The position numbers and the translations under genes were made by a program. From the sequence record MF498773.1: 64,000 bases of DNA; one strand, written 5' to 3'. Positions 3,297 through 47,255 of this stretch are shown in pieces. The notes beneath the pieces are model-generated. The model was not told the origin of the DNA and did not search any database. It saw nothing but the letters and a program-made list of their open reading frames with translations. Position 1 is the stretch's first letter. Every line of letters begins with the position of its first letter.

Positions 3297-6200
3297 ATCC
3301 ATACAACGAAATCAATCCTAATGAGGAATTTATTATGAATATTAAAATCACTAATTCTGGATTCTCTACTGTTGGTATGTTCGGTCAAAACCATCGTTTG
3401 ATTGAGATTGATGGAACACCTTTGTTTTATACTTGCACCGCATTCTCCCCGAATGACCATCGGATTTTTGTCCTAAAGTCGGATCGTCAACTGTGTCATT
3501 TTGTTCCTCGTGGTGTAGTCGTTGATGAAGAGTTTGTTTTTAATAACATCGATAAGTTGATGGAAGAATCGGAGTCACACAATAATGTGTATATTTATTG
3601 TGTGACAACCACCGGAATGATTGTTCGTCCTGTTAAAGAGTCTTTTTCGTGGGGAGCACCCAGTTACAAAGGTGGTTATTCTTCTGATGTATTTGATATG
3701 GAATCTGATTTGTTTTCTAACATTATGAAACATGTCATTGAAGATGATAATATCAATCACTTCTATTTTGTTGATGCGGTTACTGGTCAGGAGATCAATT
3801 AATGTTCAAATCACTATTTTGTAAACATGATATGAAGGTTATCTTTGAATATACTTCTGAAAGTCCAGCAGAACAAATTTCTAGATTGACCGAACTCTTG
3901 GAACGACCAAAAAATGTAGAATCCCTTCTAAAAATGACACAAAAAGAACAAATTGTTATTGTGTGTTGTAAAGAATGTGGTAAAATGAAGACTGTTAAGA
4001 CAAAATTTAATCAAGGATAATCCCATGTTTAAGAAAACTACCAAAACCGATAAATCTGTTGCTATCTCCAAACGTATTAGCCTCATCAAAACCCACGTCA
4101 CCAACACAATGGAACTGTTTGACTTCCTGAGTGGTGTTATCAATAAAAATATTCTGGTTGGTGGTAAATCCGTCCAGTCTATTCTGGGGCCGTTGTACTA
4201 CCCGTGTGCAAACAAAGCAGAACGAAACCAATATGTGTTTTCTCGTTTTGCCAATTGTACTTTAATTCGAGAAAAATATGGTGTGCGGATCACAACCAAG
4301 AACAAATATATCGCCAAAGATGTTGCAGATCTTCTTGGTCAGGTATTTAAAGTATCAACCATCAACGTTGGTGATTTAATTACCTTTGTTGTGAAGGTTG
4401 GCAAACCGTCAGGTAATGCGTCGTTCACCAAAAATGAACCGGCAATTCAAGAAGCAAAAGATAAACTGTTTGAGATCAGTTGTAAGCTTCGTGAACTTGA
4501 CGAAGAACAAAAAAATCTAGATATCCGGTTGAGAGAAGTTAGTGATCTGTCTCGCCGTAATCGGACTACGTATCACAGTTTTCAACAAGAAGCATACAAG
4601 ATCCGAACCGAAGCAAAAAATAAATATGATGTAACCATCTAAGGGATATATCATGAGTCTAAAAACTATAAACCAATCCCAGTTAGAAAGGGCTATCGAA
4701 AACTATACCAAAATCATGTCTATGGTGAAAGATGCCGTTGATATCCGGGTCAATCTCAGAATGAATGAAACTATGGTGGTTGGGTGGATTTTCAAGCGTC
4801 GTGTCAATACATGCCAATATTTTCAAGATAACAGCTTTGCTGGTGGATTCTATACCGAGAAATATATCCGTGCCGAGGTAACAAAAAATCTATTACGAAA
4901 AATTGGTATTCTTCATATCGAGAAAGTATCTCTGTATCAGAGTATGGTAGTTATCGATGGCGCAGATCCTTTCATCCAAGCCGATGAAGAAATGTGCAAC
5001 TTCATCGATTTGATGATAGTGAAAACGCCATTGGTTGTTGAAAAGATTATTGCAAACTACCACGATTTGTATAGGACTAGACACGAATGAAAAAATTCAC
5101 CATCCTGTTCTGGATTTACACATTCTTAGTTTTCGGGTATATTGTTGAAGGTCCGGAAATAAAATATGTTGATATTCCAGCTACATTAGAAGAGTGTTAT
5201 TACGAACCAGAGCACACACAAAAGGGTATGCTTGTATGCGACTTTGATATCAGTGGATTCAGTAATTACGAGTCTGATAAGCTTATTGCTGAGTATGGTA
5301 AGTACATTACCAAGGAATATCCAAGACAAGAGGTTCGTAAAAAAGTTGATATGAAGGGTCATCAGTTCTTGATCAACGTAGAGACTTTGGAGACCAAAAA
5401 GTTTTTGGAAAATCTTGGGATAGCTGTAATCTTATGGTGTCTTGGTATTCTAATAGTCGTTGTTCGATTTATAGGTAATATGATTTATGGAGATTGTTAT
5501 TATGAAACTAGTTTCTCATAATAAAGTATGCCCTACTTTCGGGGTTGATTTCCATGGGGTTAAGTTGACTTTACCCATGAAATACCTTTATGGTTTTCTG
5601 GCTATGAATTATGATGGAACCGTTGTGGCTTACATACATCCCCCGTTATTCAATAACGGGTATTGGTCTGATACATATCCACACCGTGATGATATTTATG
5701 TTGCAAAAGTAGAGACGGATATCCATCCAAGTAAAACACTGGTATGTATTAGTGACAACCGTGTTAAAAAATATATGGAATAGGAAAATGAAACTGATTG
5801 TTAAAGAAGCCCATAAAGAAGATGGGATGACTGTAGGGCCTTACCAATGGATTGAGAAAACTGATGGTACTCTTTACGCTTGGCGCTTCCATCGAGTGAT
5901 GTCCATCGAGCTGTATGATCGTATGGTCAATGAATTGCTTGATGGCAAACCGCCGGTTGGTGATTCTAAAGATCTGGCAGCCCGTAAGTATCTCAAGTTC
6001 GGTATTATTACCGACCCGTCCACTTTACCAAGCGAAAACAAGGACACACAATGATGTCAAAAGATGAAGCTATGGAAAAGGCATTTTATGAGTTGTTGGA
6101 GATGGATGATGAGTATTTTGAACTACGTCTAAAAGAAACCATCGCACAGGGTGGAGTCTTTCAGAAAATGGCAGAAGATGGGTTTGTTCCATCCTTAGTT

Positions 6201-6686
6201 TCTGAGAAGGATGATCCGCATGTCTTTTAAAGTGGCGAACCATTATGAATTAGAGGAAGGTCGAGAGTATTTATTTAAGGATTCTCGTGGGTGTTTCTTT
6301 CTTGGTATTTATTATGATTTTGATGTAAATGGGTTTTATACGGATTCTCATGATTTCATAGAGATGGGTCGAGTTTGCGTTGTGTGGGAACTACCAAATG
6401 AAAATAGTTGATACTATGCCCCAAAATGGTGCATTCGTTATGGTATTGGAATGGGATGACGAACTACACAGTGATAGTTTCAAATATATTGACAACGTTC
6501 TTCATGTATGGGATATTCCAGATATGGATACGTCACTTTCCGAATGGATTGAAGTAAACCTCAGTGATTATTATCATCGTTGTGTGTTTGAAGAATGTAA
6601 TGTAAAATATATTGTAAAGTGAAAAAGAAAATAGCCAATAGGATGTTCCGACTGGGCTTTACCTAAACTAAGTGAGGAAATGAAAG

Positions 6687-7421
6687 ATGTTTGATAAAAT
6701 TGTTAAATTTGTTAATGAACTGGCTGAAAGTGGTTTCGTAAACAAGATTGGAAAAGACGAATATAGTTTGGTGATGAATAACTTCTATAATAATCCGGCT
6801 TCTCCTTTGTATCTCGAACAGGTAAAAGAATACCCAGCAAAACTTCTCATGTTTCCAGTTGGTAAACAATATTCTAAAATCACCAGTTGTAAAGGTCGAT
6901 TGATTGAAGGTGGTAAAGAAAACAAGATCTGGGAATCTAGTTATCGCCACATGTTCAATCAGATTCTCAGTAAACATTATGGTGATGAAATTGTGTACGG
7001 TATGAAAATCAAGGATGTCATTGATACCCTTAATGAAGTACGCGAGCATATGCGGGGCGTATATGGGGTAGAAATCATTTCCCGTATTGTAGTGAATTCA
7101 TTCTTTACCGCAGTTTACAAAAATACAAATATTATTGATGGACGGTTCGACGGTTATGTTAAAGATATGTTTGATAGTACAATCACATCGATTGTAGAAG
7201 CTGGGGGATATCCAATCTTCTGTGAGTTGGATAAGTTCATCTACGTATCTCCAAACGTCGTTAAGTTCGAAAATAGCACCCATGACGACAGGCTGAAAAA
7301 TATTATGGTTATTGACGGTTATACTTACGTAGCTGATGTAGATCAAAAGAAGAGTAAACGAGTTCGTCCGGTGGATGTGGATAATCCCAAACATCTTCGT
7401 TACTTTAACAATTTGAAATAG
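6687..7421 (+). CDS. Hypothetical protein resembling a degenerate family-B DNA polymerase fingers/palm
   Basis: IKDVIDTLNEVREHMR...SRIVVNSFF resembles motif B; EAGGYPIFCELDKFIYV occupies the motif C (YGDTDS) position; catalytic residues are not conserved. Confidence 0.4.
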   Translation: MFDKIVKFVNELAESGFVNKIGKDEYSLVMNNFYNNPASPLYLEQVKEYPAKLLMFPVGKQYSKITSCKGRLIEGGKENKIWESSYRHMFNQILSKHYGDEIVYGMKIKDVIDTLNEVREHMRGVYGVEIISRIVVNSFFTAVYKNTNIIDGRFDGYVKDMFDSTITSIVEAGGYPIFCELDKFIYVSPNVVKFENSTHDDRLKNIMVIDGYTYVADVDQKKSKRVRPVDVDNPKHLRYFNNLK

Positions 7422-7466
7422 TTGACTTCATAATCCAAAGCCTGTATCTTAGCTGATATAGGCTTT
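7422..7466 (+). promoter_or_regulatory. Promoter/stem-loop cassette
   Basis: TTGACT followed by the inverted repeat aaagcctgtatc / gatataggcttt, then a T run. Confidence 0.6.
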
Positions 7467-7488
7467 TGTTGTTTCTGAGGAATAGATT

Positions 7489-9051
7489 ATGTGTGGTCAG
7501 TACCCTGTAGATGATTTCATTGGACAAACTTTTCCTACTCCGAAAGGTGGGGTGTTGACTGTTGTTGGTGACAATGGGTTGAAGGGTAGTAAAAAGATGT
7601 ACAAACTATCATGCTCAATATGCTCCCGCGATTTAGAATTGTTCCCCCATCTGTTTGAAAGTAGAAAAGGAAACCTAAACAAGAAACAAATACCGTGTGG
7701 ATGTTCTTCTAGAAAAAGATACACAGAAAAACAAAATATTATTTTGATCAACAGAATATTACCGACTGTTGGTTTGTATGGTCATAAATGTGAAGGTTCG
7801 ACTGGTGTTATTGTCGGTGGTAACGAAATATTTTCAATATATTGTCCAATACATTCCCATGATAAAGAATTATACCCCAATCCTTTTACAACAACAAAAG
7901 GCCATTTAATGTCTGGACGGATTCCATGTGGGTGTTCCAATAGGGCAAAAACTAAGACAGAAGAACAGGATATAGTATTAATAAATCGGATTTTAAAAAA
8001 GAATACAGCATTAAAAACTCACAAATGTTTAGGTTATGCAGATAACAAACTACATTTTAAGATATACTGTTCGGTTTGTAATAGTGACGAAGATTTATAC
8101 CCAGAGCCGTTTACAACAACAAAGTATCAATTAGAAATGGGTTATATCCCTTGTGGATGTGCAAAAAATCATAAGTATGAAAAATTCCAAATTTGTATTC
8201 TTGTGGAACGTCACTTAACAGAAAACGAAAAATATAAAGGTCATAGATTTGGGGGTATTCTCGACGGATATAAAAACATACAATCTAAAGTAAAATTGTG
8301 GTGTCCTCATCACGGATACTATAATATTAGGTTTTCTGACTTAATTCATGGTGGTAAGGGGTGCTCTAGTTGTGGAGTGGAATCAACCAAAGATAAACTG
8401 AAAGAACAAGACCCAGTTGGCAAGATTCTATCTGTTTTAAAAACTGAAAAATTTGAAGGTCATGAATTTGAGGGTCTACCAAATGGATATAAAAACGCAC
8501 AATCTAAAGTAAAATTGTGGTGTCCTCATCACGGATATTATCAGATTTCTTATAATGACCTTGTTCATGGTGATCGTGGTTGTCCTTCTTGTGCGGAATA
8601 TGGATATAGACCAGTGAAACCCGGATACCTTTACGTAACCAACTGGACAAACTACGATAAAGATACAAACGAGTTTTTCAAAATAGGTATCACAAACTTC
8701 TTAGATCAACGTATCAAACAACAAGCTCGTAAAACGTCGTACAAGCCTCACCAGCTAATTGTATTCAAGTTCGAGGACGGTTCTATCCCACAAGAACTGG
8801 AACGTCTCACAAAGCCATACAGACAGGATATGGAGCATCCTATCATCACACCCGACGAGTTTGCTGATGGTACGACAGAAATCCTTCAAAACTGGATTGA
8901 TATTATTAAAATTCTCCCAGAACTGATTGACACGATCAGGGAGAAAGGATACACTCCTGAAATAGAAGTTGGTAAACGACTTTACAACAAGTTGATTAAG
9001 CTTGACAAAGACCAAATGGCTAAGGTAATCTTAGATCATCTTTATAAATGA
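7489..9051 (+). CDS. Free-standing homing endonuclease-like protein (Zn-binding repeats plus C-terminal GIY-YIG/T5orf172-like nuclease)
   Basis: Three CxxC...IPCGC repeats, two KVKLWCPHHGYY...GCxxC repeats, and C-terminal YLYVT...FFKIGIT...RIKQ. Confidence 0.75.
   Translation: MCGQYPVDDFIGQTFPTPKGGVLTVVGDNGLKGSKKMYKLSCSICSRDLELFPHLFESRKGNLNKKQIPCGCSSRKRYTEKQNIILINRILPTVGLYGHKCEGSTGVIVGGNEIFSIYCPIHSHDKELYPNPFTTTKGHLMSGRIPCGCSNRAKTKTEEQDIVLINRILKKNTALKTHKCLGYADNKLHFKIYCSVCNSDEDLYPEPFTTTKYQLEMGYIPCGCAKNHKYEKFQICILVERHLTENEKYKGHRFGGILDGYKNIQSKVKLWCPHHGYYNIRFSDLIHGGKGCSSCGVESTKDKLKEQDPVGKILSVLKTEKFEGHEFEGLPNGYKNAQSKVKLWCPHHGYYQISYNDLVHGDRGCPSCAEYGYRPVKPGYLYVTNWTNYDKDTNEFFKIGITNFLDQRIKQQARKTSYKPHQLIVFKFEDGSIPQELERLTKPYRQDMEHPIITPDEFADGTTEILQNWIDIIKILPELIDTIREKGYTPEIEVGKRLYNKLIKLDKDQMAKVILDHLYK
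8266..8541 (+). repeat. Internal duplication (~57 bp) in the endonuclease gene
   Basis: ggatataaaaac..acaatctaaagtaaaattgtggtgtcctcatcacggata at 8266-8322 and 8485-8541. Confidence 0.9.
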
Positions 9052-9061
9052 GAATCAGAAA

Positions 9062-9619
9062 ATGAAATATGAACTTGGTAAGAAATATAAAATCGTGTAC
9101 ATTCATGCAGATGCATCAGATGAATTCGGCGTATCTACCGGTGATGTGATTGAATGTCATTACATCGACGATCAAAATGGTTATTTGTGGACTCGCGACG
9201 TTTATTGTTATGGTAAACAGGTAAATCCTTATTATGAACATGGTGCATGGTGTTTCGCTGCTCCATCAGATCCAGAAATTATTTTGGAAGAATATGAACC
9301 AGAACCAAGCTTGTCAACCATCTTCACTACCTCGGTTGAACTTGGTCGGGTTGATACTTCAAAAAAGCGATCTTATGATTACGTTCTCTCCAAATGTATG
9401 GAAGAACTCGGGGAACTGTCTTTGGAGGTGCAGATCGAAAACGGTTTGTCTTACAAGGAACCGGGTAAGGATGGTATTCGCGGTGAAGCTGTAGATCTGG
9501 CTATTGCTGCTATGGATATGTTCGCTCTTGCCTGTGGTGATATGAACAAGCAAGCTATCGAAAATCTTTTCCTTTCTACTATGGAAAAGAAAATTGTAAA
9601 ATGGAAAGAGAAGGCTTAA
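9062..9619 (+). CDS. MazG-like nucleotide pyrophosphohydrolase with an extra N-terminal domain
   Basis: KCMEELGELSLEV...GEAVDLAIAAMD matches the MazG EExxE...ExxD metal-binding pattern. Confidence 0.75.
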   Translation: MKYELGKKYKIVYIHADASDEFGVSTGDVIECHYIDDQNGYLWTRDVYCYGKQVNPYYEHGAWCFAAPSDPEIILEEYEPEPSLSTIFTTSVELGRVDTSKKRSYDYVLSKCMEELGELSLEVQIENGLSYKEPGKDGIRGEAVDLAIAAMDMFALACGDMNKQAIENLFLSTMEKKIVKWKEKA

Positions 9620-46434: not shown

Positions 46435-46916
46435 TTTATTTTTCCTCATGATATTGACTTTATAAAACCAAATGGTTACCATCGCTTATACTGCTCATTT
46501 ATATTTATGGTACTAAAATGTATACACCACCTTTTAAGAGTTTTAACATTCCTGTTATAATTGATAATTTGGTTCTCGACCTCCCAGTAAACGAACACAA
46601 ATATGACAAATTTGCTGTAACTGTAAACAATGATGGTCTGGTTGAACTTTGGCCCGAATCTTGCGTTTGTGTTGGTATTGTTTACAGTAAACAGTGTGGT
46701 TTCTATGTATGTGATGATTACAAAGGGTTTTGTTACGACAGTGAGATCCCAGTGGGTCGCATTGACCATGAAGACTCCAGTTCACTGGGATATCTAAATT
46801 GCATTTGGTTGTTTGAACGTCCAGATGATGGGGTAATAAATTTTATTTCTAAAAACATATTGACACCAGCCGACGAAAGTGTAGAATAAGGGTTGTAACG
46901 TTGATGGAGAGAAGAT

Positions 46917-47255
46917 ATGACAACTATTCACTGCAAACCAGATTATGTTGAGTTCTATCATGGTTCCTGTACTCTTGGTTTAAAAGGTAATATGTTGCTT
47001 CCTCCTGAAATGACCGATACAATTTCAGAGAAAGGTCGTAAGAAAAACTTAGACCGTGTGTTCTTCACTAAAGACCGTGGACTGGCAAAAGTATATGCAC
47101 GACGGGCGGCTCGGTCGATTGGTGGAGAACCAACTTTGTTTCGTGTTGTGGCCCCGGTTGACACTGTATTTATGAGTGAAACCCCCGGTGCTACCGTTTA
47201 TCATGCCGCTTGGGCTTTTGTTGAACAAATCCCGTTCGGTAAACTGAGTGACTAA
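46917..47255 (+). CDS. Putative ADP-ribosyltransferase (Arr/Tpt1-like, H-type)
   Basis: FYHGS...LLPP...RVFFT.D...A..YA..A......LFRV pattern. Confidence 0.55.
   Translation: MTTIHCKPDYVEFYHGSCTLGLKGNMLLPPEMTDTISEKGRKKNLDRVFFTKDRGLAKVYARRAARSIGGEPTLFRVVAPVDTVFMSETPGATVYHAAWAFVEQIPFGKLSD

Follow-up and report, generated by a model that had tools for sequence, protein, structure and literature searches.

The Aeromonas phage AS-szw (sequence record MF498773.1), of which we analyzed the first 64,000 nucleotides (the window), carries at positions 6687..7421 of the plus strand an open reading frame (ORF) with an ATG start codon for a protein of 244 amino acids, P0001. An earlier note, made from the DNA sequence and its translation, had described P0001 as an apparently inactive derivative of the family-B DNA polymerases (PolBs). 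Does this protein indeed stem from a PolB, what is left of the polymerase in it and how could such a remnant work? Descent from a PolB is highly probable and, judging from its residues, P0001 is in all likelihood devoid of canonical polymerase activity. Binding of a nucleotide or of a primer end as its working principle is a tentative suggestion based on the pattern of conservation. Taken together, the observations are probably best explained by a PolB-derived miniature pseudo-polymerase that works by binding.

Gene integrity and predicted fold of P0001

The ORF at 6687-7421 represents a genuine gene that is subject to purifying selection. A Shine-Dalgarno-like GAGGA (6674..6678, plus strand) is located eight nucleotides upstream of the ATG, and just 3' of the stop codon lies an intrinsic-terminator-like hairpin with a stem of 12 bp and a loop of six nucleotides followed by a T-rich run (7437..7476, plus strand). 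The gene is part of a long plus-strand run of small early-type genes. It is intact in at least eight phages (AS-szw, AS-zj, AS-sw, P19, Asswx_1, CC2, phage 65 and Biquartavirus phages), and Nei-Gojobori ratios of nonsynonymous to synonymous substitution rates (dN/dS) range from 0.10 to 0.27 in comparisons with those relatives for which dS is unsaturated. Because of its intactness across phages and these ratios we regard the gene as functional. A decaying polymerase fragment is ruled out by the gene's own ribosome-binding site and terminator, its intactness across genera and a dN/dS of about 0.2.

An AlphaFold2 model of P0001, built on an alignment of eight sequences (A3), reached a predicted local distance difference test score (pLDDT) of 75.3 and a predicted template modeling score (pTM) of 0.71; for P0006, a family member about 25% identical to P0001, the values were 81.3 and 0.78. 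When compared with the PDB by Foldseek, a check that had been suggested along with the original claim, both models alike yielded top-50 hits that were all family-B polymerases (best E-values 1.1e-3 for P0001 and 6.9e-4 for P0006), and palm and fingers with a PolB-specific topology were found in both. Independently built homologue models in BFVD matched the P0001 model with TM-scores of 0.82 (phage 65.2), 0.69 (phiAS4) and 0.61 (PMBT1). Further down, the BFVD list consists mainly of phage and herpesvirus PolBs and UL8 proteins, along with a few small unnamed phage proteins. In the structural alignments, which start at model residue 10, residues 10-228 of P0001 correspond to residues 326-609 of the Thermococcus PolB (Tgo), and the ranges covered in Pol II and Pol alpha are 348-632 and 762-1076, respectively. 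P0001 thus contains only pre-palm, palm and fingers and lacks the N-terminal, 3'-5' exonuclease and thumb domains, in agreement with the absence of exonuclease and thumb stated in the earlier note.

Along the gene (all positions refer to the plus strand), residues 1-60 (6687..6866) are modeled as helices 2-14, 17-20 and 25-34 plus a loop of low confidence and would be equivalent to the helical pre-palm segment of PolBs. Strands 63-65, 72-74 and 80-85 follow, the last of which makes up, together with helix 89-98, the motif A-like strand and helix (residues 80-94, KIWESSYRHMFNQIL, 6924..6968). The fingers are predicted as an antiparallel two-helix hairpin (helices 108-121 and 128-146; residues 108-146, 7008..7124). 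This hairpin is longer in P0006 (helices 102-130 and 137-160), and the difference of 20-25 residues in length between the subfamilies lies wholly at the finger tip. The second half of the palm (residues 153-216, 7143..7334) comprises helix 153-171, a motif C-like beta-hairpin at 175-188 (strands 175-180 and 183-188) with E180-L181-D182 at its tip as the equivalent of D-T-D, and strands 198-216, in which F-E...G-Y-x-Y takes the place of the L-E-x-E...K-K-R-Y region. The strings from which a PolB-like motif order had been read are all present in that order, i.e., IKDVIDTLNEVREHMR at residues 107-122, SRIVVNSFF at 132-140, EAGGYPIFCELDKFIYV at 171-187 and FE...YV at 194-215, and they coincide in the model with the two finger helices, the motif C hairpin and the palm strands that follow it. 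The protein ends in a basic, disordered tail (residues 219-244, 7341..7418, pLDDT <50). Its end reads …L-R-Y-F-N-N-L-K in P0001 and …[KRQ]-[RQ]-F-[LIM]-K in most relatives, and the equivalent segment of P0006 is a confident helix (245-259). This conserved tail might act as a docking peptide or be what is left of the first thumb helix.

Sequence comparisons were based on an alignment of 17 family members from Aeromonas phages, Pseudotevenvirus and Slopekvirus, which also underlies all column counts given below. Compared by hhalign with an alignment of T4-like gp43 polymerases, the family gave a P-value of 0.0055 over 103 columns and its C-terminal half alone one of 0.0019. Each of motifs B and C was placed on its counterpart in both runs, x-V-D-x-F-I-Y being aligned with D-T-D-S-I-Y (P 0.002-0.006), and the N-terminal half fell into the register of motif A at a P-value of only 0.09. 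As these are single comparisons, they lend modest support, in agreement with the structural result. Neither hhalign nor BLASTP gave a significant result against a single gp43B sequence, and PF00136 (DNA_pol_B) had no match at E<=10 in any of six family members. An ESM-atlas feature search placed a PF00136 cluster at rank 2 (score 0.91), which serves as a lead only. Distant family members carry the near-canonical motifs K-x3-N-C-x-Y-G and V-D-S-F-I-Y. Taken by itself, the motif likeness in P0001 does not exceed chance, and the PolB likeness becomes convincing only when family alignment and predicted structure are considered together. We infer homology rather than convergence, and also loss of activity and ligand binding, which are discussed below.

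Active-site residues and competing explanations

Positions equivalent to those of RB69 gp43, whose residue roles have been described (PMC3564110), were assigned from motif register and secondary structure. D411 and D623 of RB69 gp43 jointly bind the two metals (PMC3564110). The D411 column is occupied by Ser in 13, Cys in three and Gly in one of the 17 members (S85 in P0001) and is acidic in none of them. This replacement in motif A is the decisive loss, and it had escaped mention in the earlier note. Where gp43 has D-L-T-S-L-Y-P-S-I-I, P0001 reads K-I-W-E-S-S-Y-R-H-M-F-N-Q-I-L, RB43-like members S-F-R-F-L-Y-P-N-C-I-I and other relatives S-S-Y-S-L-M-Y-P-M-I-L; the canonical D-x-x-S-L-Y-P-S is not found and a core of L-Y-P, M-Y-P or M-F-N is still recognizable. 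The column of the steric-gate Tyr contains Tyr in nine and Phe in eight members (F90 in P0001), and E83 is present in ten of the 17. With regard to motif C, the first position of the hairpin tip is filled by Ser (eight members), Glu (four), Asn (four) or Gln (one), i.e., by Ser, Asn or Gln in 13 of 17, and D182, the counterpart of RB69 D623, is invariant. Both aspartates of D-T-D are therefore not retained together, and the claim of a degenerate DTD is borne out for its first position but not for the second aspartate. G174, Y186 and H199 are invariant as well, and Y214 in the K-K-R-Y region occurs in 13 members.

R482 and K486, the only conserved residues of helix N in RB69 gp43, both touch the triphosphate (PMC3564110). 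Their counterparts are R119, which is strictly conserved (17/17), and position 123, with Lys in 12 and Arg in five members (R123 in P0001). In motif B, position 133 (RB69 K560) is Lys in 14 and Arg in three members, N137 (RB69 N564) is found in 13, position 140 (RB69 Y567) is aromatic throughout (F140 in P0001) and a Gly follows this aromatic residue in seven. P0001 itself reads R-I-V-V-N-S-F-F-T, S138 included. Its catalytic Lys, which had been called degenerate, is indeed replaced by Arg (R133), but the change is conservative and most of the family has retained the Lys. Motif register and hhalign together recover R-x3-K of helix N and K-x3-N-S-x-Y-G of motif B, and the residue pairs of helix N and motif B lie at similar distances from the hairpin tip in both models. 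The four fingers residues that hold the triphosphate of the deoxynucleoside triphosphate (dNTP) in RB69 gp43 are conserved in the family.

These patterns can be accommodated in the following scheme. A PolB would have been miniaturized to a module that kept the pre-palm helices, the complete palm and short two-helix fingers, with removal of the N-terminal, exonuclease and thumb domains, and the metal-binding aspartate of motif A would have been replaced by Ser, Cys or Gly throughout the family. As this affects every member, canonical two-metal catalysis would be lost. The triphosphate grip, formed by Arg and Lys of helix N and by Lys and Asn of motif B, would have been kept, as would the second aspartate of motif C and the aromatic residues of motif B and of motif A, the latter of which stacks on the sugar. 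The pocket preserved in this way would most likely accommodate a primer terminus or a (d)NTP in complex with metal, and the conserved C-terminal tail would be available for docking onto a partner. Canonical polymerization is very unlikely because one catalytic carboxylate is absent from all members and a thumb that would clamp the primer-template is lacking. The description of P0001 as apparently inactive thus gains support from the motif A Asp being lost in all 17 members. It nevertheless stays a prediction, and residual or unusual catalysis remains conceivable, because archaeal PolB2 was predicted to be inactive and proved active (PMC8764526).

Could P0001, like UL8, instead be a pure protein scaffold that docks by virtue of its PolB shape onto replisome or recombination proteins (gp43A/B, clamp, gp32, helicase-primase)? 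Its conserved basic residues would in that case contact DNA or protein rather than a nucleotide. In UL8 and F12, however, catalytic and nucleotide-binding motifs are eroded (PMC4304020), whereas pseudo-PolB lineages that share only 20-25% identity show little or no variation at the motif C Asp and at the four positions that contact the triphosphate. This argues for a preserved pocket, which we favor over a purely structural relic since the nucleotide-contacting residues are the most conserved ones despite such divergence, and makes a scaffold unlikely. The same residues could also belong to a protein that is still an enzyme, namely a non-canonical nucleotidyltransferase or minimal polymerase that relies on D182 and another carboxylate or a bound metal and acts perhaps on nucleotides, primer ends or proteins. 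D182, the Lys/Arg at the general-acid position, the Asn and both aromatic residues are conserved, the E-L-D hairpin of the AS-szw clade provides two carboxylates, and PolB2 sets a precedent for an enzyme 'predicted inactive' yet active (PMC8764526). On the other hand, no consistent acidic residue is found at or beside the Ser, Cys or Gly of motif A, given that E83 is confined to ten members, the first hairpin position is mostly not acidic, a thumb for holding the primer-template is missing, and in RB69 gp43 it is D411 and D623 together that bind both metals (PMC3564110). An enzyme is therefore quite improbable. We give similarly little credence to an anti-defense decoy, i.e., a mimic of the gp43 palm and fingers that soaks up a host sensor of phage polymerase. 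It would fit the location of the gene in hyperplastic early/accessory regions with many small host-takeover genes, its vicinity to blocks encoding Srd ('decoy of host sigma70') in relatives and its fast evolution, with 20-25% identity between genera. The roles that may be put forward for P0001, be it replisome partner, decoy for polymerase-sensing defenses or nucleotide sensor, are speculation.

Several points weigh against a PolB-derived binding protein. Database-scale significance is reached by no sequence method: Pfam has no match to P0001 at E<=10, a profile search of PDB sequences returned neither a PolB nor any other match, NCBIfam and PADLOC gave nothing meaningful and the hhalign probability is only 7-15%. 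The Foldseek E-values are borderline (about 1e-3) at a query-normalized TM-score of about 0.45, and the models of P0001 and P0006 use shallow alignments of 7-8 sequences and are not independent because most of the alignment is common to both. The equivalences to RB69 gp43 come from motif register and secondary structure. With Lys/Arg, Asn and the motif C Asp retained, the protein might still catalyze a residual or non-canonical reaction. Ligand binding is pure inference, and a search for RNA sequencing runs found none that covers the locus. Furthermore, the gene appears to be broken by a frameshift into two overlapping ORFs in Assk (locus L016, 1501-2233) and avDM6 (locus L017, 1501-2230), and the gene is therefore perhaps dispensable. 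The Assk record is flagged UNVERIFIED, which makes a sequencing error as likely there as real inactivation, and in both records the split may reflect either an error or real loss. That P0001 is not derived from a PolB at all, and represents an RRM-like alpha/beta domain with an inserted helical hairpin, which AlphaFold and the aligners match to PolBs by coincidence, and a chance likeness of motifs, we nevertheless consider very improbable.

Distribution and genomic neighborhood

AS-szw is a T4-like myovirus of the ~230 kb group (Straboviridae, Emmerichvirinae, Ceceduovirus), and its closest relatives over positions 5500-9100 of the window are vB_AdhaM_G2, AS-zj, AS-sw, P19 and CC2. P0001 matches phrog_7204, a family of unknown function, with an E-value of 1.1e-91 (residues 12-244 on profile positions 1-247 of 252). 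A tblastn search with P0001 against 50,697 phage records identified 39 records, exclusively from Aeromonas T4-like phages, with the lowest identity (about 25%) in 44RR, 31 and the avDM phages; word-index protein searches found three close homologues and one metagenomic member and no others. HMMER returned six clusters from 1.84 billion representatives, including the divergent members P0005-P0008, with a profile of only three sequences that are 70% identical to one another; the count is low because this profile is narrow and does not give the true range of the family. A tblastn search with the metagenomic member P0007 as query extended to phage 25, Aes012 and phiAS4 (Tulanevirus) and produced weak matches in the RB43-like phages Lw1, Miller, CfP1 and phi5. 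Proteins of Lw1, Miller and phi5 are matched by a hidden Markov model of 14 Aeromonas sequences at E-values of about 1e-20. The A3 profile matches Lw1 (7e-18) and Klebsiella phage PMBT1 (4.5e-13) and has no match in T4, KVP40 or RB69. The pseudo-PolB family, with members of 240-300 amino acids that share 20-25% identity between genera or lineages, covers at least six genera: Ceceduovirus, Ishigurovirus, Biquartavirus, Tulanevirus, Pseudotevenvirus and Slopekvirus. P0007 (290 amino acids) is the most divergent pseudo-PolB of Aeromonas type and is encoded on contig DRR173099_48384 (locus L014, 121-6778), an uncultured T4-like fragment on which the genes for thymidine kinase, P0007 and an Arr-like protein stand side by side.

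The close relative AS-zj possesses a complete gp43 elsewhere in its genome, split into 43A (about 510 amino acids, with motif A) and 43B (391 amino acids, with motifs B and C), and P0001 would therefore be an extra and not the replicase. In AS-zj the two genes (locus L012, G001:34479-37760; 43A at 38-1453, 43B at 1450-2625) share a stop/start overlap, ATGA, and the break falls between helices N and P of the fingers. Split gp43 has been described with an intercistronic spacer for phages 25 and 44RR (Petrov, Ratnayaka and Karam 2010; PMC2988022), and the AS-zj arrangement differs from these published cases by having no spacer. The polymerase is split in every Aeromonas phage checked and forms an unsplit frame of 908 amino acids in Lw1, Miller and phi5, all of which carry the pseudo-PolB; the family is hence not tied to the gp43 split, and a part for P0001 in the split-gp43 system is ruled out. 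A recent duplication of the phage's own gp43 is likewise ruled out, as there is no detectable sequence similarity and in structure P0001 resembles archaeal PolB at least as closely as RB69 gp43.

In Biquartavirus, Tulanevirus, Pseudotevenvirus and Slopekvirus the pseudo-PolB gene resides in the same hoc-srd block, followed by rnlB or gene 24 according to lineage. Genes of nucleotide metabolism often lie near this block (two 5'-3' deoxyribonucleotidases, a zeta-like kinase and an HD phosphohydrolase), thymidine kinase is near the pseudo-PolB on the metagenomic contig, and a MazG-like protein is encoded two genes downstream of P0001 in the window. This neighborhood is suggestive only. The MazG-like protein (9062-9619, plus strand, 185 amino acids) matches the phrog_1247 pyrophosphatase with its C-terminal 100 residues (E 1.6e-16) and has no Pfam match. 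Between the two, a plus-strand gene at 7489-9051 encodes a protein of 520 amino acids that combines four CapR-homology repeats and a DUF723 segment with a T5orf172 (GIY-YIG-like) endonuclease domain at its C-terminus (phrog_681). Among otherwise near-identical phages the gene in this position varies in size (214-520 amino acids) and content, as is typical of a free-standing homing-endonuclease-like insert. Upstream of P0001, at 5087-5521 (plus strand), lies the gene for a protein of 144 amino acids that is hydrophobic near both ends and has a weak THUMP match (PF02926, E 1.8e-4) just above the cut-off. The GC skew turns from positive to negative near 56 kb of the window, which fits a change of coding strand where the early-gene array ends.

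In ten relatives from at least four genera, the next gene downstream of the pseudo-PolB belongs to phrog_2110 (105-112 amino acids), whose products are 61-68% identical between Aeromonas and enterobacterial phages. In an ESM-atlas feature search, clusters resembling rifampin ADP-ribosyltransferase (Arr) accounted for 17 of 30 hits (score 0.96), and neither Pfam nor a search of PDB sequences gave a match to phrog_2110. The window encodes its Arr-like protein (112 amino acids) at 46917-47252 on the plus strand, 40 kb from the P0001 gene. This protein shares 95% identity with the homologues of 44RR and phage 65 and 65-68% with those of Lw1, PMBT1 and RB69, and phrog_2110 is far more conserved than its surroundings. 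Paralogous genes for proteins of 106-109 amino acids flank the pair of P0007 and Arr-like genes on DRR173099_48384 and the Arr-like gene in the window (46527-46886). A strict functional pair is contradicted by RB69, which has the Arr-like gene and no pseudo-PolB, and by the separation of the two genes in phage 65 and, by 40 kb, in AS-szw; we keep a pair of some kind as a possible lead. It is improbable, though conceivable, that the PolB palm-fingers pocket belongs to a non-polymerizing (d)NTP-binding or non-canonical nucleotidyl-transfer protein that perhaps acts with the Arr-like protein. If true, a polymerase active site would have given rise to a new phage module for sensing or sequestering nucleotides or for modifying nucleic acids.

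Significance and relation to known polymerase derivatives

A PolB active-site module of some 240 amino acids persists as an independent, selected gene in at least six genera of T4-like phages, keeps the residues for the incoming nucleotide and drops one catalytic carboxylate. Being small and of natural origin, it lends itself to the question of what a polymerase pocket can do when it does not polymerize. The analysis provides phrog_7204 with a name and a testable hypothesis, and its members include Lw1, which grows on E. coli BL21 and is easy to manipulate. It also adds a further case in which enzyme relics that are invisible to sequence searches in the 'dark matter' of phages are recoverable by structure prediction. 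The P0001 family was previously unnamed, and our full-text literature search found no report of a stand-alone palm-fingers PolB relic in phages, nor of an inactivated PolB that occurs in a tailed phage or is reduced to palm and fingers.

The family-B DNA polymerases themselves (T4/RB69 gp43, archaeal PolB, E. coli Pol II, Pol alpha) comprise 570-1100 or more amino acids, as compared to 240-300 in the pseudo-PolB family, in which the motif A Asp is always and the first motif C Asp usually replaced. As with the split gp43 of Aeromonas T4-like phages, pieces of a PolB are tolerated as separate proteins in the same lineage; gp43A and gp43B, however, contain all catalytic motifs and constitute a jointly active replicase, whereas P0001 represents a third unit that comprises the complete palm and fingers and has diverged strongly. 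With inactivated PolBs it has in common the PolB fold, the loss of the motif A Asp and the presence of an intact, split gp43 in the near-identical AS-zj; the multi-domain architecture of exonuclease-like, palm, fingers and thumb domains is not retained. Chordopoxvirus F12, the C-terminal half of Pol epsilon, archaeal PolB2 and the polinton-like S1H-pDNAP fusions belong to this group (PMC4304020, PMC2669801, PMC2527604, PMC5499653). The likeness consists in a copy of a PolB gene that loses catalytic residues and is then exapted. All of these are full-length or nearly so, none being a stand-alone palm-fingers protein of 244 amino acids and none stemming from a tailed phage. UL8, a subunit of the herpesvirus helicase-primase, is described as an inactivated B-family polymerase (Kazlauskas and Venclovas 2014; PMC4889955, PMC4304020). 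It comes from a eukaryotic virus and combines the full multi-domain PolB architecture (about 750 amino acids) with eroded nucleotide-binding motifs, whereas the P0001 family, from phages, is a bare palm-fingers module with the motifs kept. Because only pre-palm, palm and fingers are present, P0001 stands apart from UL8, F12 and Pol epsilon: the known inactivated PolBs, including those of archaea, have kept the full multi-domain body, and the P0001 family is reduced to the bare palm and fingers.
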